From the NCBI GenBank assembly GCA_965202585.1, contig OZ241828.1, positions 31,248,001 to 31,312,000 on the forward strand: a stretch of 64,000 nucleotides of DNA. Reading direction: 5' to 3'. The notes beneath the pieces were generated by a model that was given only the letters and a program-made list of their open reading frames with translations, did no database searches and had not been told where the DNA came from. This document shows positions 3,260-62,108 of this stretch, one piece after another. Source of the stretch: Thalia democratica (Eukaryota). Made by a program: the position numbers and the translations under genes. The stretch's first letter is position 1; every line of letters begins with the position of its first letter.

Positions 3260-4510
3260 GTTGTTGCATAGCAACTTGTTGTGGACTGACATCTCGTTGT
3301 TGCATAGCAACTTGTTGTTGACTAACATCTCGTTGTTGCATAGCAACTTGTTTGTGGACTAATATCTCGTTGTTGCATAGCAACTTGTTGTGGACTGACA
3401 TCTCGTTGTTGCATAGCAACTTGTTTGTGGACTAATATCTCGTTGTTGCATAGCAACTTGCTGTGGACTAATATCTCGTTGTTGCATAGCAACTTGTTGT
3501 GGACTGACATCTCGTTGGTGCATAGCAACTTGTTGTGGACTGACATCTCGTTGCTGCATAGCAGCTTGTTTTGGTCTATCATCTCGTTGTTGCATAGTAA
3601 CTTGTTGTGGACTAACATCTCGTTGTCGAATAGCAACTCGTTGTGGACTAACATCTCGTTGTTGCAGAGCAACTTGTTGTGGACTAACATCTTGTTGTTG
3701 CATAGCAACTTGTTGTGGTCTAACATCTCGTTTTTGCATAGCAACTTGTTGTGGTCTAACATCTCGTTGTCGAATAGCAACTCGTTGTGGACTAACATCT
3801 CGTTGTTGCATAGCAACTTGTTGTGGACTGACATCTCGTTGTTGCATAGCAACTTGTTTGTGGACTAATATCTCGTTGTTGCATAGCAACTTGCTGTGGA
3901 CTAATATCTCGTTTTTGCATAGCAACTTGTTGTGGACTGACATCTCGTTGGTGCATAGCAACTTGTTGTGGACTGACATCTCGTTGCTGCATAGCAGCTT
4001 GTTATGGACTGACATCTCGTTGTTGCATAGCAACTTGTGTTGGACTGAAATCTCGTTGTTGCATAGCAACTTGTTGTAGACTAACATCTCGTTGTTGCAT
4101 AACAACTTGTTGTGCACTGACATCTCGTTGTTGCATAGCAACTTGTTGTGGTCTAACATCTCGTTGTTGCATAGCAACTTGTTGTAAACTAACATCTCGT
4201 TGTTGCATAGCAACTTGTTGTGGACTTACATATCGTTGTTGCAAAGCAACTTGTTGTGGACTGACATCTCGTTGCTGCATAGCAACTTATGGTGGACTGA
4301 CATCTTATTGTTGCATAGCAATTTGTTGTGGACTAACATCCCGTTGTTGCATAGCAACTTGTTATGGACTAACAACTCGTTGTTGCATAGCAGTTTGTTA
4401 CGATCTAACATCTTGTTGTTGCATAGCAACTTGTTGTGGTCTAACATCTAGTTGTTGCATAGCAACTTGTTGTGGTCTAACATCTCGTTGTTGCATAGCA
4501 GCTTGTTGTG
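3260..4510 (-). repeat. Coding-derived minisatellite, 36-bp unit, about 35 copies (MQQRDVSPQQVA)
   Basis: Unit ATGCAACAACGAGATGTTAGTCCACAACAAGTTGCT on the minus strand; several 37-bp variants shift the frame. It explains the overlapping ORFs at 3201-4451. Confidence 0.95.
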
Positions 4511-4585
4511 ATCCAGCAGCTTGTTCTTTCTTATGAGCTTGTATTTGCTTAGTAAGATGTTGCAGATTGAACTCTTGCTGTGTTT

Positions 4586-5647
4586 CAGGGGCGTGTTTTG
4601 TCTGGTTTCCTGTTTCTTTTGAACCCTATGAAAAAAAAAGAAAAGAAAAAAGAAAAAAAAAATCTTAGAATATCACTAAAAACGTTGTTTATTGACTTTG
4701 TTTTGGTTATTTGATAAACTTTGAATAATGAATGTTGAATTTATAACACTGAAAGATAAAAAAGTTTCCTTAACTTAAAATGCTCCTTTTTACCCAGCTG
4801 AAATAGATTTTAAAAAAAATAATTGTGACGTCATAAAAGGTAGAGTTTTAAAGTAGCAATTTTTTTTCTAGAAACTTTTTACTAAGATGCTTTTAACATT
4901 TTTTGGTAATTACCTAGGATGATGTCGCACTAATATCAAGCTGAAATTATATTGTGTTTAATATCTTTTTGAACAATAATTGTAAGCTTAAAATCAATAT
5001 GATTGATCTAAAACTATTCTTCGTTTTAAACAAGCTACATAAATACATAGTAAGAACTAAATTAATTTCTTAAAAACTAAAATAGTTAATTGATTTTATG
5101 TTACAATATAGGAATGTATGCAAGTTATTGTATCATTTGCTTTATTTTAAAAATAAAAGAAACTAAATATATAAGTTTTATTGGTTTATGATAAATAAGT
5201 TTTATTTATGTATTAATAAAATATATTTTTTAAGCCTATAATTATGATAAAAAACAACATTTAATTTAATATAATTTTTAGTTTGATATTGGTGCGACAT
5301 CGTCCGAAATAATTAACCTTTTTCTTTGTGAAGTTTCTTTTTTTTTAGATTAAAATAATTAAAAAAATGCTTTTGTTATAAATATAATCTTTTCCGCCTC
5401 TTTTAGTTTAATTTATCTGAATTTAATACAGTATAATAAATAAAAATATTTAATACTTTTCCATTACTACTTATATGTTTTTTTTTCAATGTAGAAAAAT
5501 AATTTTAAACACAGAGTTTTTCGGCTAAATATTGCGTACTTAACTGGTAGTGCATAATGCATACTTAAGAATTGCGTATTTAAGCGGGAAATTGAGAACA
5601 AAAAAAAATGTGAACCCCCTTTGAAAAAAAGTCTAGACACGCCCCTG
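4586..5647. mobile_element. Non-autonomous hAT-type DNA transposon, 1062 bp, inserted in exon 4 of unit A
   Basis: TIR CAGGGGCGTGT at both ends. 8-bp TSD CTGTGTTT at 4578-4585 and 5648-5655. Removing the element and one TSD restores the frame LTKTQ-QEFNLQH. No long internal ORF. Confidence 0.9.
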
Positions 5648-5751
5648 CTGTGTTTTCGTCAACTGTGGTTGCCTAGAAGTTTGTTGTTCTCCAGTAACTT
5701 GTTGTTGTCTAAGAATTTGAGGTTGTGTAGAAAGTTGAGGTTTCGCAGAAG

Positions 5752-6325
5752 TTTGTATTTGCACACTAGTATTTGGAGGTTTTTGTATTTGCACACTAGT
5801 ATTTGGAGGTTTTTGTAATTGCACGCTAGTATTTGGATTTTTTTGTATTTGAACACTAGTATTTGGAGGTTTTTGCATTTGCACGCTAGTATTTGGAGGT
5901 TTTTTGTATTTGCACGCTAGTATTTGGAGGTTTTTGTATTTGCACGCTAGTATTTGGAGGTTTTTGTATTTGGACTCTAGTGTTTGGAGGTTTTCGTATT
6001 TGTACACTAGTATTTAGAGGTATTTGTATTTGCACTCTAGTGTTTGGAGGTTTTTGCATTTGCACGCTAGTATTTGGAGGTTTTTTGTATTTGCACACTA
6101 GTATTTGGAGGTTTTTGTATTTGCACTCTAGTGTTTGGAGGTTTTCGTATTTGTACACTAGTATTTAGAGGTATTTGTATTTGCACTCTAGTGTTTGGAG
6201 GTTTTTGCATTTGCACGCTAGTATTTGGAGGTTTTTGTATTTGCACTAGAGTGTTTGGAGGTTTTCGTATTTGTACACTAGTATTTGGAGGTTTTTTGTA
6301 TTTGCACACTAGTCTTGAAGGTTTT
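5752..6325 (-). repeat. Coding-derived minisatellite, 30-bp unit, about 19 copies (QKPPNTSVQI)
   Basis: Unit CAAAAACCTCCAAATACTAGTGTGCAAATA on the minus strand; 31-bp variants near 5900 and 6081. Confidence 0.95.
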
Positions 6326-6582
6326 TGTAGCTTTCGAGCTTTTCCTTCCTTTATTATTTGGTAATGAAACCAGTTCTAAAGTAATAATTAAAAGTTTTAG
6401 CAACTACTGTTAAATTAATCTAATATAAAAATCAAGACCTACAGTATTTTTTATAAAACATTAACTCAATAGTTAAGGTGTTTGTTTTTTTTTTTAATAA
6501 CAGCTGTACACAGTCGTGGAAGTTTTTAAAAGTTTTAAAGTAACTAGTATACAAACTTATTATCAATATTGAATTATTTAAC

Positions 6583-6812
6583 CATAACACGATAGTTTTT
6601 CACACGAATTCGTTTTACCATACGCCTTATATCATCGACACTCGGATTCTGATTTTTCAAGAACTCTCGTTCCAGAAATTCTCTCTGGAAATTATCAAAA
6701 CGCTCGTACGGCGCATACCTTTCAGTGACGGATTGATTTGTTAAGGACCCCCTAATGTTATTGGGCGACGCTGTAGTTAAGAAAATTAATTTATCATTCC
6801 TTATCATAACTC
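6583..6812 (-). CDS. Unit A homeobox exon (homeodomain helices 1-2 to residue 46)
   Basis: Acceptor TTTTAACAG, donor GTTAAA. RFDNFQREFLEREFLKNQNPSVDDIRRMVKRIRVKNYRVM has F8, Q12, L16, E17, F20, P26, V45 and joins in phase 0 to NWFHY at 6375. Confidence 0.8.
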
Positions 6813-8689
6813 CTGTTAAAAGGTTGTTAAAATCACATCTTACTAAGTAAATTAGTTAAATTGGTTTTTATAAATAGTTAATAACTATGTCAAAAATAAG
6901 TGCACTGTGGAAGTTATAAAGCTTAAGTATAAGTGATGTCAAAAACTAAAATTTTATTTAGAATACAAAAATATGTAAAATATGTTATTAACATCTTTAT
7001 CAATTTTGAAAATAGTTATTTCAACTACTGGTTTTTCTAGTATTATAATTCTAACAAACCCTATATAAACGTGTTGACTGGATTACAAAGTTTCGGAAGA
7101 AGAGAATGGTTGGGAATTATATTTACACGTTGGTGTCCAACATAGTCGGGTGAAGGTAAACCCTTCGATGATTAACCGTTTAGGTGACTGCTGTTGCTAG
7201 GAAACTGTTGCCAGATGCTGGAACTAAAGGAGCCTGCAAAAAGTTGGAAGAGGTTGTTGGGGGCATTTGATTGAGCTCTCTGTTTGGATTCTGTCGAAAT
7301 TTGTATTTCAAAGCTAGAGATAAATTGTTAATAAATTTAGAAACTATATAAAATTAATAGTGTATTTGAATAGCATACTTTTACAGAACAGTATTAAATT
7401 TTAAAATGATTGTTATGCTTAAACAAAAAAAATAAATTAATCAAAAGTTGACCTGTTTGGTAGTAAAAGCTTTAGCACGTCCAACTCTTGCAGTAGGAAA
7501 GTTACTTTGGTGTTGGGGACCACCCGGAAAGCCAGGACTTCTTCTAAAGAAAAGGAGGAGAAAGGGAGAGCTTCCCTGAAAAAATCTTTGATTTGGGGGA
7601 TTTTCTTGAAGTAACATTCTTGGAAAGGAGTTTTCCTGAAGTGGAAGTTTTGTACTCAAGAATCTTCCTTGTTGTGAAAATGTTTGATTTGTCGAGATGT
7701 AGTTACAATTGCATCTGTATAGAGGGCACGAAATACAATCCGTTTGGTCCATTTTTTTCAATTTTGTTCTGCTTTTTTAGAGGTTATTTACAACACCTGT
7801 AGTTAATAATAAACACTTATAAAAGAAGATCATTAGTTAATAAAAAAACCTTTAAAATAAGAATGCTATCTAGATTTTAACTGTACCATTAATAATTCAT
7901 AAGTATAGCTCAGTTTGAACGTCTAAGAAAGTTTTACATTTTCAAAAATACCTATTTCTGACTTTAACCTTAATTAAGCAAATAGTTTGCTTCATATACA
8001 TTAGTAAACAAAGTGTTTACCATATAAACAGCTTAGTGTATGCTAGAATTGCTGATTGCTTACAATTTCCCCTAAACAAAAAAGGTTTAAGTTTTGTTAT
8101 TATCGAGGTATACTTAATTAGTAGTATTTTAATATTGTTTTTTAAAATTGTTATAAAAAATAAAATTTTTCTAGTATTACTTATAACTATCTTTTAAAAA
8201 AGTATTTATAGCATGTGTTTTACTATAGCTTATTACTTTCTATATAATTCTTCATTTGTCCTTTAACGTATTTTTTAGTAAATGTATTACTTAATAGTTT
8301 TACTACTGTCGAAACTTTGAATTTAAAAATATATTAAAGTTTTCAAAGAATTCTATTTCGTTTACGTAAATATATATATATTTTTCAGTAAAATCATTTC
8401 TTTTTTAAAGTTGTACTAGTGATTTGTTTTGTTATACAAAAATTAATTTTATCTAACCAAAAACTAAATTTATTTTATAATATTTATTGGCCATTTTTAT
8501 TTAGTTTTCTTTATCTAGTATATAAGTCAAGATATATTTTAAACTAAATAAAAATAGCTTTTTTATAATACAAACACCTTATGGAACTTACGATGAATTA
8601 AAATATTTAGACACTTTGCTAAAGTAATATATTTTATCAAAAAAAAAAAAAAATCACTACAACGTAAAAAGGTTTATTCCCAAATCTTC

Positions 8690-15839: not shown

Positions 15840-18056
15840 CTGAAATTTTAATATTTTAATTTAACAAGTAGTAGTAAAAAATTATTAATGATTTAAAATA
15901 ACTCATTTATTTTTATTGTGGTCTAGTGTAAATTTCACATTTTCCTGTAAAATATAATTTAAGTTTAAAATATACCATTAGTAACGATTAAGACAAATTT
16001 TTCGCTCTTCTTCATCAACTTCTAGTGTAAGATTCAAATTACGCCCCCCTTACTAGTTTTAGCTTTTATAAAGTATAGTATGCTTTTTATCAGTAAAAAA
16101 AAACTTACTATTATATTGTGTGCTTTTACTCCTAATTTTAACGCAATTCGCGCTGACCTTTCAAAGTTGACATACTGACCATTCGAGAACTCTTCTTCTA
16201 GAATTTTCTTTTGCTCGGCTGTGTAATTAATTCGAGACCTCGGGACTTTGGACCTGGGAGGCTGAAGAGAACTGGAAACTTGTACATTACGTAACGACAG
16301 TCCTGTTTATTTGAATATTAGTATATCACTCTTTATTAGCTTTTATTTAGGACTTATAGATGACTTGATTTGTAAAGTTTTGTAGAGAAATAAGTATTTA
16401 ACTTAAATGCTACTATAAAAATATAAAATATAAACAAAACAAAGTTCAGCAAAATTTAAGAAAAGTTAATTATGTAAAATTGTTTTACATAAATACTTTA
16501 AATATTTAGATAAAAAGAATGTTTGGTACTCCTATATATTTTTTCTTTACAGTTTAAGTAAAAATAAACTACTCTGTACTTAAAATGGTAAGAGTTAAAG
16601 TCTTTTAATTTTTTTATCAGCTAATATTAAAATAACTATTTAGGTAAATTTACTAAATGTTTTGCAAAACTTGTTATTAACATTAAAACCGCATTTCTAA
16701 CTTAAATAAGACAGTTTTTTGCAAATTCAATAATTTTAAAAGTTAATTTTCAAAGCCTCATATAAAGAGATAGGTACATATTGAAAAAAAAAACTAATCA
16801 CTTAAGGTTATTGACGAAGCTGTTAATAAGCTATTTAAAATTTTTGAAATTAGTAAACAGTATTAAGTTCAAACAGTATTTTTTAAACTATATCTTAAGC
16901 AAAAACTGACTATCTTTGACGTTTAGAAGCGAGTTGACTGCAGTACTTGGAATTTGTCGACCGGAATTATTGGTTGAAGTAAGTTGTGGTCCAACATGGT
17001 GTGTAGGACTCGGAGGTGGCTGGTTGCTAGTAAACCCCTGTTGTTGCCGTGGTGGGTGATTACTGTTGCTACCAGGAAACCCATTTTGTTGCCGTGGTGG
17101 GTGATTACTGTTGCTAGGAAACCCTTGTTGTTGCCGTGGTGGCTGGTTGCTGTTGCTACTAGGAAACCCATTTTGTTGCCGTGGTGGGTGATTACTGTTG
17201 CTAGGAAACCCTTGTTGTTCCCATTGTTGATGATTGCTGTTGCTAGGAAACTCTTGTTGTTGACGTGGTAGGTAGTTGCTGTTGCTTGGAAAACCTTGTT
17301 GCCGTGGTGGGTGATTACTGATGCTAGGAAACCCATGTTGTTGCCGTGGTGGCTGGTTGCTGTTGCTAGGAAACCCTTGTTGTTCCCATTGTTGATGATT
17401 GCTATTGCTATGGAACTCTTGTTGTTTCCATTGTTGATGATTGCTATTGCTATGAAACTCTTGTTGTTGCCATGGTGGATGATTGGTGTTGCTAGGAAAC
17501 CCTTGTTGTTGCAAGGGAGCGTGTAATAAAGGATTCTGCTGTATACTAGGAGTTCTGCCTTGAGACTGTTGTATAAACCGTTTGTTTCGATTCTGATAAA
17601 ATTTTATTTCGAATTTAGGAAGAAGTTTTGAAGTATTATAGTAATTAATTTAACTTAATGGTGTATTCAAACTGTTTAATTTTATATGTCGTGAGAATTT
17701 TGAAAAATGATGCATTTACTCTTAGTGGTAAGTTTCTTAATAAATAAATTACTTATAGTTAGAAAATTATAAAATAAACTATTTTAGTACGCTTTAAGTT
17801 GGTAAATTCGTTAGAAATTAACCTGTGGCGTCGTAATACGATCCCTATTTTGTCCATATTCTGCCGAAAAGTTCGCTCGGTATTGGGAATTACCTTGATT
17901 GAAATGGGGATTACCCTGTGTATTTCTTCTAATTTCGGGCCTGGGAGGTGTAAAAGCAGGAGGTAAACTTTTCTGAAGTAACATTCTTTCATTTGTAAGG
18001 ACACTGTGACAATTGCATCCGTTTTCAGAGCACAAATAACAATCTTCTTGGTCCAT
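15474..18056 (-). CDS. Unit B: PRD-like homeodomain protein, 491 aa, four coding exons
   Basis: Exons 18056-17823, 17592-16911, 16302-16109, 15839-15474 join in phases 0/1/0 with no internal stop (donors GTTAAT, GTCAGT, GTAAGT). Homeodomain KVPRSRINYTAEQKKILEEEFSNGQYVNFERSARIALKLGVKAHNII|YWFHNRRPKERK. The exon-2 donor is the least certain junction. Confidence 0.8.
16109..16302 (-). CDS. Unit B homeobox exon (absent from the ORF track)
   Basis: Acceptor AAACAG and canonical donor GTAAGT; encodes R5, Y8, Q12, L16, E17, F20, Y25, I34, A35, L38, I45. Confidence 0.9.
17020..17520 (-). repeat. Imperfect coding repeat, ~42-bp unit, about 12 copies (QQQGFPSNSNHPPR)
   Basis: Lies in unit B exon 2 and stays in frame throughout. 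The motif is single-copy in exon 2 of units A, E, F and in the visible part of G. Confidence 0.9.
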
Positions 18057-18659
18057 TCTTTTAATTTTAACTACTTTTCTCAAACCAATTTACAATACCT
18101 GTATAAATGTAACTGTATAAAAATACAGTTTGATTCCTTTGGTATCAACATAAATTGATAGTAATTTAAGCAGTTTTTAAATAGAGATTAAATTTTCCCC
18201 TTAATAAATGCAGATGCATAACTTGGTTTAAACATCTATAAAGAGAGTTTATTCATTCTTAACTAAGGCTCTTACTGCGTTTACCTAAACTAAGCAAAAT
18301 ATGTTTAGTTATACTAGTTCGGTTATGTAATTATAAATATTGTTTAGTTTAAAGTTCAATTTAAGAGTGGTAGTAGTGATTATTTGTTTTTTACTAGGAG
18401 TGATTTTATCTGACTGGTTGTAAAATTTGATTTAACATATTAAATGGATATTTTAATTAAAACTTTTTTACCTTGTATAAAAGTCAAATGCTATTTCAAA
18501 CTAAATTAACAAAGCTACATTATAATAAAAAGAAATAATGGAATACACGATGAAATAAACTTTTAAGGCAGTTTCTATTACTAATATAATCTTATTAAAA
18601 AGCTGTAAATCACTGTAACATAATTAAAACTTTGTTCTAAAAATTTTTGTTTTGAAACT

Positions 18660-25344: not shown

Positions 25345-27118
25345 TATCTGCACTTAGTTTGAAAAAAGTTTAAATATATCTAATCATATTAAAAGTAGTT
25401 ATGCATCAAAAATACTTAGATCTTAAAAATTTGTACTGAAAATTGTTCTAAAATTTTATTTAAAATTATAAACATGGAGGCCAATTAACCCAGAATCTTG
25501 AAAAACTTTGAGTTTCAAAAACTTTTAAAAGACCTGATATTCATAAATTAGAACCAAAATAGTATTGTACCAATATTGTTAAAAAATTAAAAAATTGCCA
25601 GAAAAATTATTATTTTTAAAGAGTTATTTTTTATAAATACTAAAAGGTTATATATAGTCAACAAATTTTATGAAAACGAAGCTCAAAAAGACAGTAACTA
25701 TTTAACAAGTAAACTGTGATACCCCTTTCTAAAAGGCTGTGTTCACTAGTAGTACTGTTTTATTAGCTGTTTTTGATTATCTTTATAACTAAGGTATAAA
25801 TTTTCAAAATATAATAGTTTTTTTTTAATTTTCATTTTATGTATCGAGTTATAATAAATTTTCAAGTACTAAGTTCATTGACACCATTTGTTATATTTGC
25901 TATTTTACCTACTTGAATTTTGAAATTAAGAAGTTTTCTCTAAACTATATTAGGTATATTTTGTGTGTAGAAAAACGAAAAAGCGTTCAAAGTGTTTGAT
26001 ACTATGACCTGGTGCACAAAGAACATTTTGCTTATCTAGTGGCACACCTCGGATACCTTTAAAAATCTTTTCCATGATAGATATATTATTTTAAATGTGT
26101 ACTTTTATTTGCTTATTCAAATTAAATTATTTAATTGTTGTAACAGTTAAATGACTCAATGGTTTGTACATTTCTTTTTTTCCTTAAAACCAAGCAAGCT
26201 TGAAATGTGTCCATAACCGCAGGTTAATTTTCAGAATTTTATAAACTTTTCTGAATTTAAATTACTTCTTGGCCATCTTTCGACAATTAGTACATCTGAC
26301 CTGATTGCTTAAATGGCCTAAGTGGTGATATTGTTTATTTTAAGAAACTAGGTCTAGCTAACTTCTATTTTTTATTTGTTATTAGTACATAGCAGTTACG
26401 TAGCTAGCTCAAAGAAGTTACGAATCTAACATAAAACTAGATAAAACTTAAATAGTTATCTATTTGTATTAGACATATGGAAGGTATTAGTAATTTTAAA
26501 ATAAGTAGTATCTAGTTAAATTTTATTTTTAAGTACAGTTTCAATTTTAATTTTTATCGCTTGTTTTTTTAGATTTTTTTAATTCTAACGAGTTTTATTA
26601 GTATACTAAATCATTTAGCATAAGTACTTATTTAATTTTTAACATTTGAATATAATGTCATTTTATATCTTAAAACTTTAAACTTCAGTATGATTTTATT
26701 TCAATTTGTTTTCATCATAATTCAGTAAGAAACTATTTCTGATGAGTCTTACTACTGAAGTACTAAAGTAAGTTTAAAGAAAATGAAATGTATTCTGTTA
26801 TGTACCTTAATATTTGTTTTACATCTTAAATCAAATTCTAAACTAAAAATAGATCCTAAAACGTTTATATTTGAAAAAATTGAGCAATAAGGTATGATCA
26901 ATCCTTGTCTTAACTTGAGCTGGTCTCACAGAAAACAGGCTTAGGCATTGTGTTTTTTACTTGATGTAATTTTCTTTTTATTTTATTTATAAACCAATAT
27001 GATTTCGATTTTTCATACAACACTGAGTACAAAAACTCTATTAGTATTTTTCAAATAGTTTATCATGCAAATTATCAGTTTTATACAATACGCAGCATTT
27101 TATTAAATATTGATTATT

Positions 27119-27775
27119 ATGTCATCTGGTCAAATAAACGAAGTCGAGGACAGCCTTAACGTGAAAAGGTTGCAAGTAGAAACTTTTAGTTTTAAAACTA
27201 AGAGCAATTTTATCATTGCTCAGCGAAATGTATCGTCTTTGGATGCTTACAACAAATCAGTACACTGCCAAAATTTTAAGAAGGCTCCTTTAGATTACAA
27301 TGATCATGAAGCTATCGTTGCGAAACGAAGACTTCAAAAAGAGCTGAGAGAATTTAATTTAAGTTCACCAGCTTACATAAGCGCTTACTTAAAAGAAGAC
27401 AACTTTTTTGAATGGGAAGCGATTATTCAAGGACCTCCAGGAACTTCTTACGAAGGCGGATCCTTCATTTTAGACTTGATTTTTCCAGCTAATTACCCGT
27501 TCAGGCCACCAAAGGTTACTTTCAAGACCAAAATATACCATTGCAACATTAACAGCGATGGTTATATCAGTTTAAACGTACTTCGTTCTCAATGGGTCCC
27601 GGCTATGACCATAGAAAAAGTTTTGCTGTCAATTCAATCTTTTTTCACCGATTGCAACCCTGATGACTGTCTCGTGCCTGAAGTAGCAGCTCAGTACGTC
27701 AACAATCGCGAAGAACACGACAGAGTTTGTAGGGAATGGACAAAGAAGTACGCTACTGAAGAAGCTGAAATGTAG
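27119..27775 (+). CDS. UBE2E-like: Intronless UBE2E-like ubiquitin-conjugating enzyme variant, catalytic Cys replaced by Ser
   Basis: Full UBC fold: KRRLQKEL...EWEAIIQGPPGTSYEGG...YPFRPPKVTFKTKIYHCNINSDG...TDCNPDD...EWTKKYAT. The HCN motif, N-terminal extension and YAT ending are class E features. First ATG is at 27119; AATAAA near 27882. Confidence 0.92.
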   Translation: MSSGQINEVEDSLNVKRLQVETFSFKTKSNFIIAQRNVSSLDAYNKSVHCQNFKKAPLDYNDHEAIVAKRRLQKELREFNLSSPAYISAYLKEDNFFEWEAIIQGPPGTSYEGGSFILDLIFPANYPFRPPKVTFKTKIYHCNINSDGYISLNVLRSQWVPAMTIEKVLLSIQSFFTDCNPDDCLVPEVAAQYVNNREEHDRVCREWTKKYATEEAEM

Positions 27776-30700
27776 TGATCTTATTGAATGAAGTACTGTG
27801 ACTTATTTGAACAATTGTATTTATAACATGCAATGTAGTCTAGACGATGTTATGTTTTTAAGTTTAGTAGTATTTAGATTAAATAAAGTTTAAACAAAAC
27901 AATAGATTGTTTCTATTTATATAAAGCTAGCTAGTTTTAAACAAGGTTACAAGAAAAAAGTAAACTTTAAATACTTGATAAAAGTCTTTTTCATAAAAAT
28001 TTTATGCCTAAGTAGCTTTGTGCGATATTATTATACCCACAATGGCGGTAAAAAAATTAAATTGTTTTACGTTTTGCTTAAATTTCTATGTTAAAAATAT
28101 CCTTTAAGTTTATAAAGTAGGCATTCATCGAATATATTTATTATATATATCACAACAACAAACAAAGCATGATGTGTTTCTATCACAATGATTTTAATTA
28201 TCTTTATATATTTTTTAAACCTTTTATATTAATGCCAGTAAAATAAATTCTATAAATTAAAATGATAAAACATGTATTAAAGTATCATTCATTTGAATTT
28301 TTAAAGTTAGTTTATAAGTATTATTGATTAAACATTGTTTCTTTTGAGTTTTTTACAAAAAATTAAGGCTTTAAAAAAAATGAATATAAAAATTATTATT
28401 CTTATAAGACAAAACAAAGTTTAGTTCTAACTGGCATATTTTTTAGTTATACAATTATCAAAAAGTTAAAAATATTTTGTATATATTTAAAACAGTAGAA
28501 ATGTAGAAGCTTCACATGTAAAGCTATTCTTGAGAGCTCGTAATAATTAAATTAGCTTTTACAAAATATTTACCCGCTATAAGCTTGTAAACAAAAGGAA
28601 TGTATCATTCAAAAAAAAAAAAAAAAAAAAAATTAATGTTGTATGTTTTGTAACAATACATGCTTAGGATAAAGTTGACAAATACCATTAAAGATCTACA
28701 TAAAAAAGTAAGGCTAAAACTAATAATATTTCATTAATAAGCACTTAGCAGATGGTAACCGGCAGCTTTGAAACCTTTTATGAATAAAATTAGCTAGACA
28801 TGTTTGTAAAAATGTTTATATCTCTAAACAAAAGTGATATATGTAAATTTTAAGTTATAAAATGATTTTATTTCAAGAAAAATATTGTGAGAGACAATTG
28901 TACATGTGTTAACAGTACTATAATATTATATTCTTGTTACGGTTTTTATTTAGTTTCAAAATATACTATGTCGACAAAAAATATAAACAGTTTAGCAAAT
29001 TTTGTTTATGATAAAGCTTTAAATAGTATTTTTAAACTTTTGATTGTTTTATGCATTTGTTGTATTCTAAAGTTTGTACTTTTGATTCTATACTGAGGTT
29101 CAAATAAAACACACAAAAGTTTTTTTAAATACAAATATATATATTGGTTTGTGTTTTTTAAACAATCAGTTTCCTTCTGTAAAAACTATTACAAAGTATC
29201 TAACTATATGAAACAATATGTAAAGAAATGTAACACAATAGTTTATATAAATACAGTAAATGTCATATTTGTTATAGACTTTAAATTAGTCTTTAAATGC
29301 GTACTTAACAAAAAGTGCATTTCAAATATTTGTCATTTCAAAGTTTTATTTGATGTTGATGTGGCTATCAAAATAATTAAAGTAACAATTTCTATTTACC
29401 AACTAGTGCTCAAGAAAATTTTAAAACTTTATAAAAGATTTATTAATCAGAAATCTGTAGTTTTTAGCAAACTGTTATTTAAAACTATACAAATCGAATG
29501 CATAAAAGTAATTAAAAAGTTTAACAACTTTGAACTTTTTAAACTTAAATACTTTACCTTTATTGAAATTTAAAGCAATTTTGTCGCATTTTCAAAAGAA
29601 AATAGGAAAAAGAAAGAATCCTAATAAGCTTGTATAAAATATTTATTTGATTAAATAATAATAATTAAAATTAAATATTGTGGTTAACTAGAACTAATTA
29701 TTTCATTACTCTCAATTAAAAATTATAACAACTAATAAACAAGTTTTTAATTTATTAATGCTTAAATTAAGTCTATCACTGATAAAACATTACTATAATT
29801 TATTTTAAATACAATAGTGGTGTTACAATTTAGTTTTACATATAAAAACATTTTTACTTTCAGACATTAAATAAGTTAGTTATAAATTTTGTAAGCTTTA
29901 TAATTTTTTCAAACCTAATAATATTTGTTTATGATATATTTCTTAAGTTGTTTAAGAACATATTTAAAATAGAAATTAGTATTGTTTAAGAAAAACTCAG
30001 AAGAATATTAAGATATGAATAAAAACAAAGATGTAGTAAAGATTGTTTCCATTTTTTTAGTGTGTTGTTTGTGTTTCCGTATGAAGTTAATTAAGCTTGA
30101 ATTTGATTAATTTTCATAAGTTTTTAACTTAAAAGTATTTTTAAATAAAGCATTTAAATAGCATCTTAATGTATAACATAATTAAATCTGCAACATAAAT
30201 AAAATAAAATTAAGTTTTTAAAGAAGTCCTCTATATTAGCCAATAACATTTGGCTTAGATAACTAAGCTGAATCAAGTTATACTAAAACAAAATTAAAAA
30301 TCTAAAGAAAAAAACTTATTTTTGTTTCAAATAAACTATATTAAGTTTATAAAGTCTTGATTGCAAAAAAGTTTTAAAACACGCTATATTTAACTGAAAC
30401 TTACTAAATACAACTACAACAAAACGTATTTTAGTGTTAAGAAGTTAAGTAAAACATACGTCATCAATAATTAAAACTTTCAAACTTAAAACCAACTCTA
30501 TGTACTTCAATTCAAATAACTAAACTTAAAAAAAACTTTATTTAATATAAAAAATAAAAAAAATTGGTGCTTAGGACTAAGAAAGCTAAAACAAAAAAAA
30601 ATAAATTAAATATATAAAACTATACCAATCTGAGTATAAGAAAAATTCTAAACTGGAACTAAATTTTTTTTATTAAATTAAAAAACTGAAATCACCAAAT

Positions 30701-39011: not shown

Positions 39012-40386
39012 TCAAGTAGCTTGATGTTGACAAGAAATTTGTGGTTGTTCAGATTTTTTTATTTGAACATTAGTATTTTTGAGTTGTCGTCGTTTTTTAA
39101 ATTTCTCTCGTCTGGCTTTTGCTCTTCGGTGCCAAAACCAACTCTAAAGTTTTAATAATTAAAAATTGAAGCTTTTTATTTAAATAAGTGATTTATTAAA
39201 ATCTAGACCGATGCTAACATTTACTAACATGTATTCGAAAATATAAATGCTGAATTTCTTTTAGAATAGCTGTATACAGCCGTGGCAGCTTTAAAAGTCA
39301 TTAAGTCACAACTAAACAGTTTTCAATATCTAACCGCTACACGTCTTAAAGGCACACGAATTTCATTTGCAATACGCTTTCTATTTTCTAAATTCGGATT
39401 CTTATTAATCAAGAACGCACCATTCAAAAAACCCCTCTGAAATTCATCCAAACACTGGTTTGGGGCTAATGTTTTTGTGCCGGGCTGGTACCTTAAGGAG
39501 GCTCTATTATCATTTGACGACCCTGTAGTAAACAATGCTAGTTTATTACACCTCCCAACTATATTTGTTTTAGCATGGTAAAAGCACACCTTCCTCATTA
39601 AATAATTAGATTTGTATTTATTTGTAGTTAATTAGTGTAACAAAAATAAAAACACAATGGCAGCTAAGAAGCTTAAGTATTAGTAATGCCTAAAATAAGA
39701 GTTTTTTGTAAGTTTATTACTAATAAAATTAAACTACTATATACAGTTTTTATTTCAAAATTTTTAAAATTCTTCCTTCTTATGAAAATAGTTACTTTAA
39801 CACCTTACTTTTTGTTATGGTTTTTGATACAGCTAATTAAACAAACCAGTAATTGGATAATTAGAATATTGGGAACTGAAATGGTTTGGATTTAGACTTA
39901 GACGTTGTTGTCCAACATAATTGGGTGAATTTAAACTCGCTAATGGGTAACCATATAGGTGATTACTGTTGCTAGGAGGAGTTTGTTGTTGCCAGAGTGC
40001 TGAAACTGAAGGATTCTGGTGAAAGTTAGGAGAGGTTGTTTATTATAAAATTTAAGTTTTAAAAGTACAAATAAATTGTACATTATTAATTTAATAATTG
40101 TTTGAACATAATGTTGTGTTAGGATTGCTTATAAAGAATAGTATTAAATTTTGAAAATAAAAAATCTGCTAAAATAAAAAGATAAAATATAAACTTTCAC
40201 AGGTCCAACGTTAGCAGTAGGAAAGTTTTCTCTGTGTCGGGGATCACCCTGAAAACCAGGACTTCTAATTTGTGGTCTGGGATGAGGAAAAGAGAGTGGG
40301 GAGCTTCCCTGAAATAAAATTCTTTGATTTTGGGGATTTCTCTGTTGTGAAAACCTTGGATTTGAGGAGGTGTTGTGTTTGTCCAT
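39012..40386 (-). CDS. Unit F: short PRD-like homeodomain protein (~238 aa) or pseudogene
   Basis: Possible exons 40386-40195, 40015-39847, 39558-39335, 39143-39012 join in frame if non-ancestral splice sites are used for intron 1. Helix 3 is RVA|SWFWHRRAKARR. It lacks both the Cys motif and the terminal motif. Confidence 0.6.
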
Positions 40387-47023: not shown

Positions 47024-48337
47024 TTACAAAAAATCGTTCTCAGTTAGAGTAATAATGGGTGGCGGAGACAGTTGCGTAACTACTTGTTGTTGAGTAGTAG
47101 TTTGTTGTTACATACCTTCTAGTTGTCCATTAGTTTGTTGTTGTCAAAAATTTGTTGCTGCGAACTAGCTTGTTGTGGCCTAGAAATTTGTTGCTGCGAA
47201 GTAGCTTGTTGTTGCCTAGGAATTTGTTGCTGCGAAGTAGTTTGTTGTGGCCTAGAAATTTGTTGCTGCGAAGTAGTTTGTTGTTGCCTAGGAATTTGTT
47301 GCTGCGAAGTAGTTTGTTGTTGCCTAGGAATTTGTTGCTGCGAAGTAGTTTGTTGTGGCCTAGAAATTTGTTGTTGCGAAGTAGTTTGTTGTGGCCTAGA
47401 AATTTGTTGCTGCGAAGTAGTTTGTTGTTGCCTAGAAATTTGTTGCTGCGAAGTAGTTTGTTGTTGCCTAGAAATTTGTTGCTGCGAAGTAGCTTGTTGT
47501 TGCCTAGAAATCTGTTGTTGCGAAGTAGTTTGTTGTTGCATAGAAATCTGTTGCTGCGAAGTAGTTTCTTGTTGCCTAGAAAGTTGAGGTCGACCAGAAA
47601 GTTGAGGTTGTGCAGATTGTTGTGTTTCTTGATATCTTCGTTCTCGAAACCACTTCTATAATTTAAAAATCATACAACAGCAGTTAAACTAATCAAATAT
47701 AAAAAACTTCTTCTAAAGTAACTTTTCATAACATCTCTCTGATAATTAAGCTGCTTAATTTTGTTTATATCAGCTGTGCACTTTCGTTGAGGCTTTTAAA
47801 AGTTTTAAAATAACTAGTATACACTTATTGATATCTAACCGCTACTTTATTCTCTGTCACACCGATTCGCTCTGCAATACGCCATCTATCGTCGAAATTC
47901 GGATTCTGGTTCATCATGAACACACCTTCCAAAACACCCCTCTTGAAATCATTAAAATGCTGATGCGCCGCTAATCTTTCAGTGATAGGTTGATACGTTA
48001 GGGACGCTCTGATATTGTTAGGCGACCCTGTTGTCAAGGAAACTAGCTTACTACTCCTTATCATAACTTTATTTTTTAGGCATAGCAAAAGCACACCTTT
48101 CATTCATTCAAATTTTATCAGTAAATAATTAGACTTGTGTATATTAGTAGTTAATAAATGTAACAAAACTAAGAAAACAGTTGCAGCTAACATAATTTAA
48201 TCGAAAAACATATAAAATTCTTCTTAATTATGAAAATAGTTATTTAACCCCTTACTCGCTGATGGATAATCATATAGGTGACTGCTGTTGCTAGGAAACC
48301 CTTGTTGTTGGAGTGCAGGAATTGAAGGATTCTGGTG
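47024..48337 (-). CDS. Unit G: PRD-like homeodomain gene, 5' part in the assembly gap
   Basis: Exon 2 is visible from the gap to 48256 (donor GTAAGG); homeobox exon 48066-47840; exon 4 from 47655 (KWFRERRYQE). Open to TAG at 47119. A 1-nt shift near 47145 and a TAA near 47108 separate it from the terminal PPPIITLTENDFL* at 47024. Confidence 0.75.
47150..47575 (-). repeat. Coding minisatellite, 36-bp unit, about 12 copies (SRQQQTTSQQQI)
   Basis: In-frame array in unit G exon 4; its unit differs from the 36-bp unit of unit A. Confidence 0.95.
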
Positions 48338-58296: not shown

Positions 58297-59052
58297 TTAA
58301 GTTGAAATCTTTTGTAGCAATTTTTCATATTCTTCTTTGAAGTAACTGTTTTCATTTTTAAGTGAATTATTTTCACTCTTTAGCCTCATTGTTTCTTCAA
58401 TTCTCATTTTCATTTTTGAACTCAGCATAAGAATAACTCCAACAAAAGCTACTGCTATAGCAAAAATAACAAACAGCACATTTGAGCTTGGGTTGTGAAC
58501 AAAACCCTGTCCAATAATAGACTCTGCATTCGAGTTTGTTGTGTTCACTAAGTTAAGGCTTAAATTAAGAGAACGATTTTTTTCTACGAAGATCTCTGTA
58601 GATAAGTTAGCTGTATTTGGCTTCAAACAAATGAATCTCTTTTTAAAACCCCAGTCTTCAATAACAAAGAGTTTCTTAAAGTAAGGAGTGTAGGAAGCTA
58701 TGTTTACGTCTTCAGACTTGTTTCCAACCCACCTATACAAATCACCGTGCAGTGTTTTGTTATAAACTATATTGTTAGTAAATAACCGGATTATTTTATC
58801 TCCACATTTCTTAATATCAAGACCTATATGGTACTGCTGAAATCCCCAATGAAACTTGCACGATGAGTCCTCAATCTTCGCGATGCTCCTCAAAGCGTCT
58901 CGATCCCTTGAATTTGTAATAGGGGCCAATATCTGGCCCCTCTTTGCACACTCCACCTTGGCCTCGCAAGCCAAAACTCTCTTTTTATAATAAGTAAAAG
59001 TTCCTGTTGGCGTAGTGACAGTCGTAGCACATGTAGGATTCTTATACCTCAT
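58297..59052 (-). CDS. Divergent C-type-lectin-like domain membrane protein
   Basis: 251-aa ORF with CTLD-like pattern C...AKVECAKRGQILAPITN...YHIGLDI...KKRFICLKP, a hydrophobic segment VLFVIFAIAVAFVGVILML and a coiled-coil-like tail. A phase-0 acceptor at 59083 suggests an upstream exon. No signal peptide located. Confidence 0.75.
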   Translation of the reverse strand: MRYKNPTCATTVTTPTGTFTYYKKRVLACEAKVECAKRGQILAPITNSRDRDALRSIAKIEDSSCKFHWGFQQYHIGLDIKKCGDKIIRLFTNNIVYNKTLHGDLYRWVGNKSEDVNIASYTPYFKKLFVIEDWGFKKRFICLKPNTANLSTEIFVEKNRSLNLSLNLVNTTNSNAESIIGQGFVHNPSSNVLFVIFAIAVAFVGVILMLSSKMKMRIEETMRLKSENNSLKNENSYFKEEYEKLLQKIST

Positions 59053-59234: not shown

Positions 59235-62108
59235 ATGAAACTGATTACGAAGCACATCATTTTTTCATTACTGTTTAGTATGAGTTTTTCTGAAACAAAA
59301 AGTAAGTTTTATATTGTTACTTAAAATTATATTTAGTGTTTTGTCAAATAATATTTCGTCTAAGAACTTTAACCATTTAAATTTAAATTTTACGTCATGG
59401 AAAAAACGTCAAACTGTATCTCATGTGCATGATACGATTATTGAAATATACTCTTGTATACTAGGTCTATCGACCAAATTTGATCCCATTTGTTGTCGAA
59501 GAAAATTTTTACTTAGTTCTTTTTAAATTTTTCTTCAATAACATATTTTTAAAAGAAAATTATTTTACAAATTTGTTATAAATTTTATTCATACAATGAC
59601 TTTATTATAAAACTTTGTAACAATTCCAAACTTACAGTGCTACAAAATAAAAAGCTCAAGCAGTAAAAGTAGAACACTGCAATACACGAAATGGTGACAG
59701 AGATATTTTTGTAGCCGAAGGTAGTTTTAGTAAAAGATGCCCAAGAAAAAAATCAGAGTTTACATATGTTACAAACCAAGAAATTTCAAAACTTTCTAAT
59801 TGCATTAAACAATTGGCTGTTGAAAGAAATATTTTTGATGTAAAAGTCTTGCCAGTAAAACAGATGTGCGATAAAAAATGTATAGACACAAATTGTTCAC
59901 TGCACTACGTAATTGATCTCGAAAATTATGTAACAAGTTGCAAATCAAAGACTTTTCAACAACAACATTTCAGTTTTTGTGCTACAACAGACTCAAAAAA
60001 CAATGGCGATTCAAACTACATTGTTATTGTGTTTGTACTTGCTTTTGTTGTTCTTTTAGTTGTTGGTATTTTGACGTACTTCTATCGAAGATATAAAACT
60101 TCAAATAATTCTGAGACGGTAAGTCGAATAATAAAAAGTATTTGTTTTAGCATTGCTTTCGGTCATTGTTTTGTTTTAATTAAAAACCTTAAAGTTATTT
60201 TTTACGCAGGCAAATGATGAAGAAAAAATAACATTCCTAAAAGGAAATAAACAAACAAGTTGTGACAGTTTAGAAATAATAACTTCAGATCTTAAAAGAG
60301 AGAACCACAAATCATTAATTCAAGAAATCGATGAGCTACCTTCTACGTCATCTAGCAGCACAAGCTCTTGTGAAAAAACTGATGAAACTTTTTCATTAAA
60401 AAACTGATGAAAAACAAATAAGTTCGCAGAGTTTCGCAAACACAAACAACCGTAAGTACATTAAAAAGGAAGGTTTTTAAAAACAAAATTAGAAGCGGGT
60501 AAATGAGTAAAGTGTATAATAATATAAATTTAAATTTTAGAAGTAAGTAAATTTTACTACATAAGTTTGTTTTTAAATTTTATTTTATAAACAGCACTTG
60601 CTACTGATTACAACTCAATGCCACTCAGCGAATTCTTAATTACAAACAAAAACTTCTACGTTGCCTACCAACTCGTTTTGCAAGTAAAATATTTTTTTAA
60701 TTTTTTAAACTGCAGATATCTTAAAAAATTTTTAAATATAAAAAATAACTAAAAAATGTTTAATGAAAACAAAAATTTAGAATAATTATGTTTGAATAAA
60801 GCTTTTATTTTACTTTCGTGATTATTTATTAAACTTCTGTAGAGTGATCTGCTAATTAGTTTGTAGACTGTAACCAAAATAAATAAAAGAGGCAAAAAAT
60901 GTTTTTTTACAAAATATTACAATTAAATTGTAATCAAAACATTTTAATATTTAATAGTCTAATTTCTTTATATGGGAAATGTAAAATAGTCTGTTATCTG
61001 TACCAGAAAGTTAAATAATGAAATGTAAAAAAAAAAATTATACACTTTTTCAGATCATTAGAAAAATAAAGAAACTTCATAATCAAGATTTTTGTGTTGG
61101 GTCAAGCTTAAAAGTGGACAACATTCTCATTTTTAAGCAACCGTTTTTACCACCGTACAACATAGGATTCAAATTCATAGAAATCAACTTTCAGAAGATA
61201 AGAAGTAGTTATTTTTTATTTGTTACCTTAAAAAAACTATTGATTATAAAATATTTAGAAAGAAATTTATCTAAATTGAAGACAATCAATGAAAGCAAGT
61301 TGCAACTAGATCAAAAGAAAATAGTAAATGAAACAATAAGGAATAAAATCAGTCGTCCCAAAACAGTTAGTAAAAATTAATGATTAATTTAAGCGTTGGT
61401 ATATTTGTAAAGCTGTACCATTTTAAATAAACAATTACAACTAAAAAAAAGTGATACGTACATAAGTGAAACTAAAAAAATAAATTAATTAGTTTACTTA
61501 AAAATATTCTTATAAAAGTTTAGTATAATATTTTAGACTGAAAAGTTTTCTAAACAAGAAGATATAAAACAGCTGTCCATTCTAGTTCTAGATATCTTGT
61601 CTGCTTATGTCAAACAAAAATTTTCGATTACTAACCCTGAGTATTTCGAAAAATATAAAAAATTTTTGGAAGGAAAGAGTATGTTTTGGCAAAAAGTTCC
61701 AAAAGAACTTTTAGAAATGGTGGAAGGTATTGAAATCTGGATAACTGTTAGTTTATAATAAAACTTGTGCCTCAAACCTTATTGTTTAAAGCAAATAAAT
61801 GAATAAATCTGTCTAAAAAACATTAAAGTTCAAAATATTATTTATAAAATGTTGTGTTTAGTATTAAATAAATTTATAAAGTATTGCATAAAAAACATTA
61901 TACTGTTTATGGTGAATTATTTTTCATAGAAAAGCATACTAATAAAATAATATTTTATTAGGTTGGATTAATAACGGATGGTTGTAGTGAGAAACCCAGT
62001 GAAAGGCCTGACATCGAAGAATTTGAAAGAAAGTTTATAAGCCTGCAACTTGAACTAAATGCTCTTATTGAAGAGGATAAACAGAAATACGGAAATGACA
62101 TCATATGA
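59235..62108 (+). CDS. Single-pass receptor-like protein with Cys-rich ectodomain and degenerate kinase C-lobe (pseudokinase); frameshifted in this assembly
   Basis: Exons 59235-59301 (signal peptide MKLITKHIIFSLLFSMSFS), ~59655-60118 (ectodomain and TM), 60210-60451, 60595-60683, 61054-61204, 61259-61365, 61537-61746, 61962-62108. All have GT-AG ends and matching phases from 60595 onward. The exon-2 acceptor is unresolved, and there is one extra A near 60400. Confidence 0.7.

Follow-up and report, generated by a model that had tools for sequence, protein, structure and literature searches.

UBE2E-derived proteins with serine in place of the catalytic cysteine form a family kept by selection in Thalia democratica

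We found that a gene of Thalia democratica codes for a variant of the ubiquitin-conjugating enzyme (E2) UBE2E in which a serine stands in place of the catalytic cysteine. The gene belongs to a large family whose UBC domain and active-site serine are under purifying selection and which is conserved in other species. From the sequences it appears reasonably probable that this family consists of lineage-specific, UBE2E-derived E2 variants of the COP10 or UEV kind, kept by selection and likely to serve as non-catalytic binding subunits. The window analysed here is the whole stretch of 64,000 nucleotides, corresponding to C4:31,248,001-31,312,000 of an assembly of 801.8 Mb, and small coordinates in the following are positions in this window.

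A UBE2E-type domain and its active-site position

The coding sequence is complete and intronless, as the earlier note on this DNA had described it, and comprises 218 uninterrupted codons on the plus strand (27119-27775), beginning with the ATG at 27119 and ending with the stop codon at 27773-27775. Over residues 71-207 the 218-aa protein matches Pfam UQ_con (PF00179) with an E-value of 3.8e-44 and 150 bits against a cut-off of 27, and the nearest solved structures are UBE2E3, UBE2E2 and UBE2E1 with 56-60% identity over the UBC core. In an AlphaFold2 model based on an alignment of 55 sequences the UBC domain shows pLDDT values above 90, and UBE2E1 was the top match of this model in a Foldseek search (rmsd about 0.9 Å, TM 0.93-0.97). 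The UBC-fold domain comprises residues 67-213 (27317-27757, plus strand) and is preceded by an N-terminal extension (residues 1-66; 27119-27316, plus strand), which is disordered in the model, as seen for residues 1-35, save for a helix at residues 40-49.

Within the domain the motif His141-Cys142-Asn143 (27539-27547, plus strand), the HCN form of HPN found in UBE2E, is intact and its Asn143 is 100% conserved in the family. A competent E2 carries a cysteine eight residues past this asparagine, whereas here, as in all cluster paralogs described below, the position is occupied by Ser151 (AGT, 27569-27571, plus strand). The alignment to UBE2E1-3 thereby bears out the exchange of the catalytic Cys for Ser that had been proposed from the letters, and it also agrees with the proposed change of Asp to Asn just past the active site, as Asn153 (AAC, 27575-27577, plus strand) faces the Asp of the UBE2E Cys-Leu-Asp (Asp87 equivalent); among the paralogs this residue is Asp in 79% and Asn in the rest. 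Ser151 is invariant in 29 of 29 intact paralogs and in all eight of the closest relatives from Tara Oceans. No other letter occurs at its codon among the differences listed against public assembled contigs, which is a non-contradiction and not a proof. The serine is not a sequencing slip, since AGT (33 copies) or AGC (20 copies), both one base away from the Cys codons TGY, are found in all 53 scorable Ser copies of the genome and since 27 of 34 metagenome relatives have Ser as well.

The protein further has two new cysteines. Cys184 (TGT, 27668-27670, plus strand) is located in the gate loop, where it adjoins the Asp117 equivalent and replaces Pro118 (UBE2D2 numbering), and it is family-specific and invariant. 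Cys204 (TGT, 27728-27730, plus strand) takes the place of Ala138 and is invariant across the divergent superfamily, including those sub-clusters that keep the catalytic Cys. With HCN instead of HPN, the sequence Thr-Asp-Cys-Asn-Pro, the N-terminal extension and UBE2E as closest match the protein shows the marks of the UBE2E subfamily, and on the basis of its sequence we assign it to a derived UBE2E paralog clade and not to the orthologs. It also corresponds to a UEV in the broad sense, having a UBC fold that lacks the catalytic Cys and is kept under selection (dN/dS about 0.3).

Copies, origin of the cassette and relatives in other species

A six-frame search of the assembly gave at least 150 matches, and among the matches listed about 52 loci form a 2-Mb cluster on the chromosome of the window (C4:30.33-32.35 Mb). 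From the 42 cluster loci that were fetched 28 are intact full-length open reading frames and the others have one to six stops or are truncated, while about ten more loci are short decayed fragments. With about 24 of the 52 loci being broken or fragmentary the cluster is a birth-and-death family. All cluster copies fetched share the pattern His-Cys-Asn ... Gly-Tyr-(Ile/Val)-Ser-Leu-(Asp/Asn), and mosaic motifs among the paralogs suggest gene conversion. Outside of this cluster, Ser variants in which a loop is inserted behind the active site form a tandem cluster at C8:28.6-29.4 Mb, Gly is found at the catalytic site at C9:9.51-9.74 Mb, C4:77.55 Mb and C5:14.3 Mb, and Lys at C1:85.05 Mb. The C9 cluster holds six near-identical 227-aa Gly variants, and the Lys variant (L045, C1:85047380-85047832) reads Gly-Gln-Val-Lys-Met-Asp in an intact 262-aa open reading frame and has a relative in another species, the Tara protein P0149. 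The catalytic Cys is kept at three places, namely in the canonical UBE2E (L048) at C4:21.25 Mb and in two clusters at C4:83.0-83.6 Mb and C5:28.63-28.78 Mb, both of which also carry the exchange of Ala138 to Cys. In a maximum likelihood tree the canonical gene groups with a fish UBE2E (SH-aLRT 97), the Cys at the Ala138 equivalent is common to all divergent members and the clade with Gly-Tyr-Ile-Ser-Leu adds the Cys at the Pro118 equivalent.

The paralogs share not only the coding sequence but a cassette of about 1.1-1.3 kb, which starts sharply at 26885-26887, about 232 nt upstream of the ATG, and ends at about 27922-28199. A mobile-element origin of the cassette was considered because of this sharp shared 5' boundary, and the shared flanks of closer paralogs are several kb longer, which fits segmental duplication. 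The upstream block (26885-27118, plus strand) contains a TATA-like TTTATAAA at 26986-26993, a pyrimidine-rich tract, an AG at 27094-27095 and then a 23-nt leader, all of which are conserved; the AG and the leader might represent a trans-splice or 5'UTR acceptor, for which they are candidates by sequence. Downstream follows a 3'UTR-like block (27776-27922, plus strand) with a conserved AATAAA at 27882-27887, which is more conserved than synonymous sites even when the Tara species are included. The UTR-like flanks reach 72-85% identity versus 58-71% for synonymous sites, other species included, and between the Tara relatives and the window copy the 5' leader with the AG acceptor and the 3'UTR-like block are 67-82% identical. 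No A-tract was found past the poly(A) signal of the gene.

The earlier note had regarded the gene as a retrocopy of an intron-containing parent. This origin has to be given up, as the upstream sequence is shared with the paralogs, an A-tract is absent and the gene is one of the roughly 52 cluster loci among the matches listed. Nor was an intron-containing parent found: the canonical Cys-bearing UBE2E of the genome is itself a single open reading frame of 229 codons (C4:21251834-21252520), and thus an intronless coding sequence is no mark of retroposition here. As judged from the shared sequences the copy arose through tandem or segmental duplication of the cassette at the DNA level, and a retroposition far back, before all UBE2E genes of the lineage diverged, is possible.

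Relatives outside of this genome were found in marine metagenomes. The best database matches comprise 34 unnamed proteins of marine metagenome assemblies, including those of Tara Oceans, with 27 Ser, four Gly, three Asn and no Cys at the catalytic site and with the exchange of Ala138 to Cys in 31 of them, the motif pattern being unmatched in the other three. Their identity to any copy of the genome is at most 73-86% and they therefore belong to related species and not to this one. Several of these Cys-less proteins of other species nest in the paralog tree or join individual sub-families, namely P0010 that of the Gly variant L041, P0033 that of L049 and P0149 that of the Lys variant L045. The loss of the Cys is therefore older than the separation of these species, and it has been kept since. 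A profile search against 1.84 billion cluster representatives returned the variant family as about ten clusters at 50% identity, all of them unnamed marine-metagenome proteins, and all other top matches of the search were either E2s that carry the Cys or an engineered construct from the PDB. Three Ser-bearing UBE2D-like matches turned out to be the engineered 4DDG, a partial prediction from Marmota and an unnamed ENA protein, and none of the three represents a named natural family. Among 86 database matches outside of the variant family 84 keep the catalytic Cys and all 86 have Pro at position 118. A feature search of the ESM Atlas gave generic E2 clusters only, and no specific account of natural Ser-E2 families or of expansions of UBE2E in tunicates or salps came up in a literature search. 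The Tara relatives had also been considered as evidence for expression, which was rejected as all contigs checked are metagenomic DNA; contigs from sequencing runs matching the stretch show a DNA-like even depth over the flanks, and no RNA run was found to contain it. One Tara contig of 10.8 kb (L092) carries at 4359-5048 the gene for a relative with Glu at the active site (P0228). This contig is very gene-dense, has neighbouring genes of the FHA, BRCT and SH3 kind as well as gene calls that overlap, and might come from a compact eukaryote or a virus or might reflect prokaryote-style calls over exons.

The E2 gene was noted before as sitting inside a homeobox array, and this could be confirmed. 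Homeodomain first exons are located in the window on the minus strand at 6577-6816, 39323-39598 and 47825-48103, each being one of about 30 co-amplified copies, and the approximately 30 divergent first exons are interleaved with the E2 copies in the same 1.5-Mb region (C4:30.86-32.36 Mb). Since a homeodomain-E2 pair has also moved together to C7:31.28-31.29 Mb, the two families were co-amplified. The homeodomain exons match positions 6-46 of the Pfam Homeodomain and end where genes of the PRD class have an intron. Long Gln-rich open reading frames with tandem repeats lie at 3322-4280 (minus strand), 5633-6364, 16888-17514 (minus strand) and 47119-47661; they immediately follow, in the same orientation, the homeobox exon at 47825-48103 and two Cys-rich open reading frames at 7441-7761 and 17811-18083, for which no Pfam match was obtained. 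The Gln-rich frames probably belong to these fast-evolving genes as exons further downstream. Two other open reading frames of the window (58297-59052, minus strand, and 59813-60217, plus strand) have a single predicted membrane-spanning stretch each and no significant Pfam match. Elsewhere in the assembly, several stop-rich COX1-like fragments at C4:56.84-56.94 Mb, noted along with C757, look like nuclear insertions of mitochondrial DNA, and an intact COX1 with in-frame TGA codons is present on the mitochondrial contig C1833.

Selection along the protein and readings of the serine

Selection was analyzed with 29 intact copies, using pooled NG86 estimates and maximum likelihood (ML) Goldman-Yang estimates on a fixed tree for the individual segments. 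For the UBC domain the pairwise Nei-Gojobori dN/dS has a median of 0.29 (range 0.08-0.74) and is below 1 in all 405 pairs, and for the N-terminal extension it is 0.82, whereby gene conversion among the paralogs can bias such pairwise estimates. The active-site segment (residues 138-155) shows values of 0.05 (NG86) and 0.13 (ML), followed by helix 2 (residues 169-178; 0.13 and 0.12), helices 3-4 (residues 191-213; 0.15 and 0.18) and the Phe62-type loop (residues 126-137; 0.14 and 0.26). Thus the 'dead' active-site segment, on which constraint should have relaxed once the nucleophile was lost, belongs to the most constrained parts of the protein. The L7 loop with the start of helix 2 (residues 156-168; 27584-27622, plus strand), an E3-contact loop beside the cleft, is hypervariable with values of 1.24 and 1.07 and evolves at least at the rate of silent sites, and its Ser-Pro-Ala positions are variable. 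The N-terminal extension is likewise fast-evolving (0.80 and 0.96). The motif Ser-Ser-Leu-Asp-x-Tyr at residues 39-44 (27233-27250) is kept in all paralogs despite the fast evolution around it; it is predicted to form a short helix and may serve for docking or be phosphorylated. Its form among distant Tara relatives is Ser-Ser-Leu-Ser-Arg-Tyr-Glu, and canonical UBE2E is without it.

The invariant residues specific to the family are Ser151, Tyr149, Cys184, Cys204 and Glu100, and Asn143, Phe128 (Phe62 equivalent), Leu170, Ser174, Arg71 and Asp183 (Asp117 equivalent) are conserved as well. Ser151 shows repeated turnover between AGT and AGC without any amino-acid change within the clade. The branch leading to the window copy has ten synonymous and eleven non-synonymous private changes, which gives about 0.28 for dN/dS (P=0.004 for the deviation from neutrality), and its three private changes in the UBC domain are all conservative. 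Neutral divergence, the outcome named in the earlier note as speaking against a retained gene, is therefore not what we see, either on this branch or in the UBC domain. A retrocopy or pseudogene that drifts neutrally, its open frame being the chance survival of a young duplicate, would agree with the many broken loci of the cluster, where birth and death are ongoing, but it is contradicted by the constraint on this very branch, by the pairwise values of the UBC domain, by intact relatives in other species and by promoter-like and UTR-like flanks that are conserved and free of a poly(A) remnant. We disfavour this explanation and hold it to be extremely improbable.

The strong constraint on the cleft would not be an obvious need of a pure scaffold, and it leaves room for a chemistry based on Ser151. 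Together with the invariance of the serine it keeps two further explanations alive. According to the first one, Ser151 would be charged by the E1 to give an oxyester between E2 and ubiquitin, and the proteins would be long-lived ubiquitin-loaded adaptors ('traps') or would transfer ubiquitin slowly from the ester. Engineered E2s with a Cys-to-Ser exchange do form oxyesters. Moreover, Ser is invariant in the Gly-Tyr-(Ile/Val)-Ser-Leu clade in spite of the codon turnover and other sub-families tolerate Gly, Lys, Asn or Glu, suggesting that in this clade the hydroxyl group itself matters, and Asn143, Asp183, Leu170, Ser174 and the active-site segment, which we assume from established E2 structures to hold the ubiquitin tail and the closed conformation, are conserved. 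An engineered UBE2D2 with Ser at the same site exists (PDB 4DDG). However, COP10 with the same substitution is described in PMC11864197 as not being charged, and sister sub-families with Gly or Lys at the site persist under the same architecture; we regard the oxyester as fairly unlikely.

The second explanation is a relocated nucleophile, with the invariant Cys184 at the Pro118 position as acceptor of the thioester. Together with Asp183 this residue belongs to the gate loop, which according to established UBE2D structures bounds the catalytic cleft on one side. All 29 paralogs and the eight closest Tara relatives have Cys184 (100%), with the canonical Pro in each of the 86 sequences outside of the family, and it is kept in members of the clade that have Gly or Lys at position 85. 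Yet in the Ser and Gly sub-families on C8 and C9 and in many Tara proteins position 118 is taken by Pro, Ala or Ser and there is no substitute Cys. We are not aware of any E2 with its nucleophile at this position, and we hold the explanation to be very improbable. Put more generally, it is distinctly unlikely that the family works with a non-thiol or relocated nucleophile, be it an oxyester of Ser151 with ubiquitin or a ubiquitin-like protein or be it Cys184, in which case the cleft would be conserved because it is used and the L7 loop would diversify the choice of target or E3. If this were true, the co-amplification with fast-evolving homeobox genes would identify the region as a gene cluster of the germline or early embryo, comparable to the early-embryo clusters that were amplified in mammals.

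We favour instead a role in binding. As selection keeps Ser where the catalytic Cys would be, the function of the proteins is probably to bind partners and not the normal passing on of ubiquitin. Repeated tandem and segmental duplication of a UBE2E-derived gene would have given rise to the family. An ancestor lost its thiol nucleophile through a single base exchange (TGY to AGY), and the resulting Ser has been kept since. The protein retains the UBC fold, HCN, the Phe62-type E3-contact loop and the crossover helix, but a canonical thioester between E2 and ubiquitin is impossible. By analogy with COP10 and DET1-bound UBE2E2 it is most likely an E2 subunit without catalysis, or with very slow catalysis at best, which would bind E3s, adaptors or ubiquitin, and its partner specificity might have been diversified via the hypervariable L7 loop and the N-terminal extension. 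The mode of binding, the partners and the expression of the proteins are what we infer from these patterns. From the earlier proposal of a retained pseudo-enzyme the retention stands, as the protein cannot form the canonical thioester and is kept by selection, here and in other species, as a pseudo- or non-canonical E2, whereas the retrocopy part does not. The ubiquitin trap or E3 competitor suggested there is a possible candidate role.

Comparison with known E2 variants

The best match in sequence and structure are UBE2E1/2/3 (UbcH6/8/9; UbcD2 in Drosophila), which share HCN, Thr-Asp-Cys-Asn-Pro and the N-terminal extension. These canonical enzymes keep their Cys, and the genome has its own Cys-bearing ortholog in addition to the variants. 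UEVs (UEV1/MMS2, TSG101, UEVLD and AKTIP/Ft1) likewise possess a UBC fold without catalytic Cys and bind ubiquitin or partner enzymes. The classical UEVs are ancient and single-copy and have a degenerate active-site region, whereas in the family described here the cleft with HCN, gate loop and crossover helix is among the most conserved parts. The same residue has also been substituted in engineered E2 traps with Cys-to-Ser or Cys-to-Lys exchanges, the latter designed to make stable isopeptide-linked conjugates of E2 and ubiquitin, and the Lys variant of the genome and its Tara relative are natural parallels to them. In contrast to these laboratory mutants, the substitutions observed here are natural, old and under selection.

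The closest likeness is to COP10, a natural UBC fold of the UBE2D/E type with Ser for the catalytic Cys, which is described in PMC11864197 as non-catalytic and as a subunit or enhancer of E3 complexes (COP10-DET1-DDB1). The same source calls human UBE2E2 a 'noncatalytic scaffold' in DET1-COP1 complexes, where its C139S exchange is without effect. Whereas COP10 is a single conserved plant gene, the salp family has been derived independently in animals from UBE2E and comprises dozens of copies, and it differs from COP10 in its N-terminal extension, its two new invariant Cys residues, its hypervariable L7 loop and its DET1-contact residues, which are not conserved. T68, R88 and R124 of UBE2E2 are reported as backside residues that contact DET1 and bind the DET1 cup (PMC12808801); they correspond to Asn80, Glu100 (an invariant charge reversal) and Lys136 here, and thus binding to DET1 is not supported, although the equivalent of R88 is not conserved in the canonical UBE2E of the genome either, where it is Val. 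DET1 is present in the genome as one gene at C7:20.994-21.002 Mb, split into exons, versus dozens of E2 variants, and on these sequence grounds we do not claim it as a partner.

Natural E2 variants without the catalytic Cys have so far been represented by few ancient and mostly single-copy families, such as UEV1/MMS2, TSG101, AKTIP and the plant COP10. What seems to be new in this animal lineage is an independent Cys-to-Ser change of the COP10 type in UBE2E, the product of which was amplified to dozens of genes. The combination of a constrained 'dead' cleft with a diversifying E3-contact loop and N-terminal tail is an unusual evolutionary signature for a pseudo-enzyme, and the family speaks in favour of the non-catalytic role that was described recently for UBE2E proteins. 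With Ser, Gly, Lys, Asn, Glu and Cys at one and the same site, with or without the Cys in the gate loop, nature provides a series that could serve for the study of E2 functions that do without a thioester, and that could also be used to ask whether a Ser-based E2 chemistry exists in nature.
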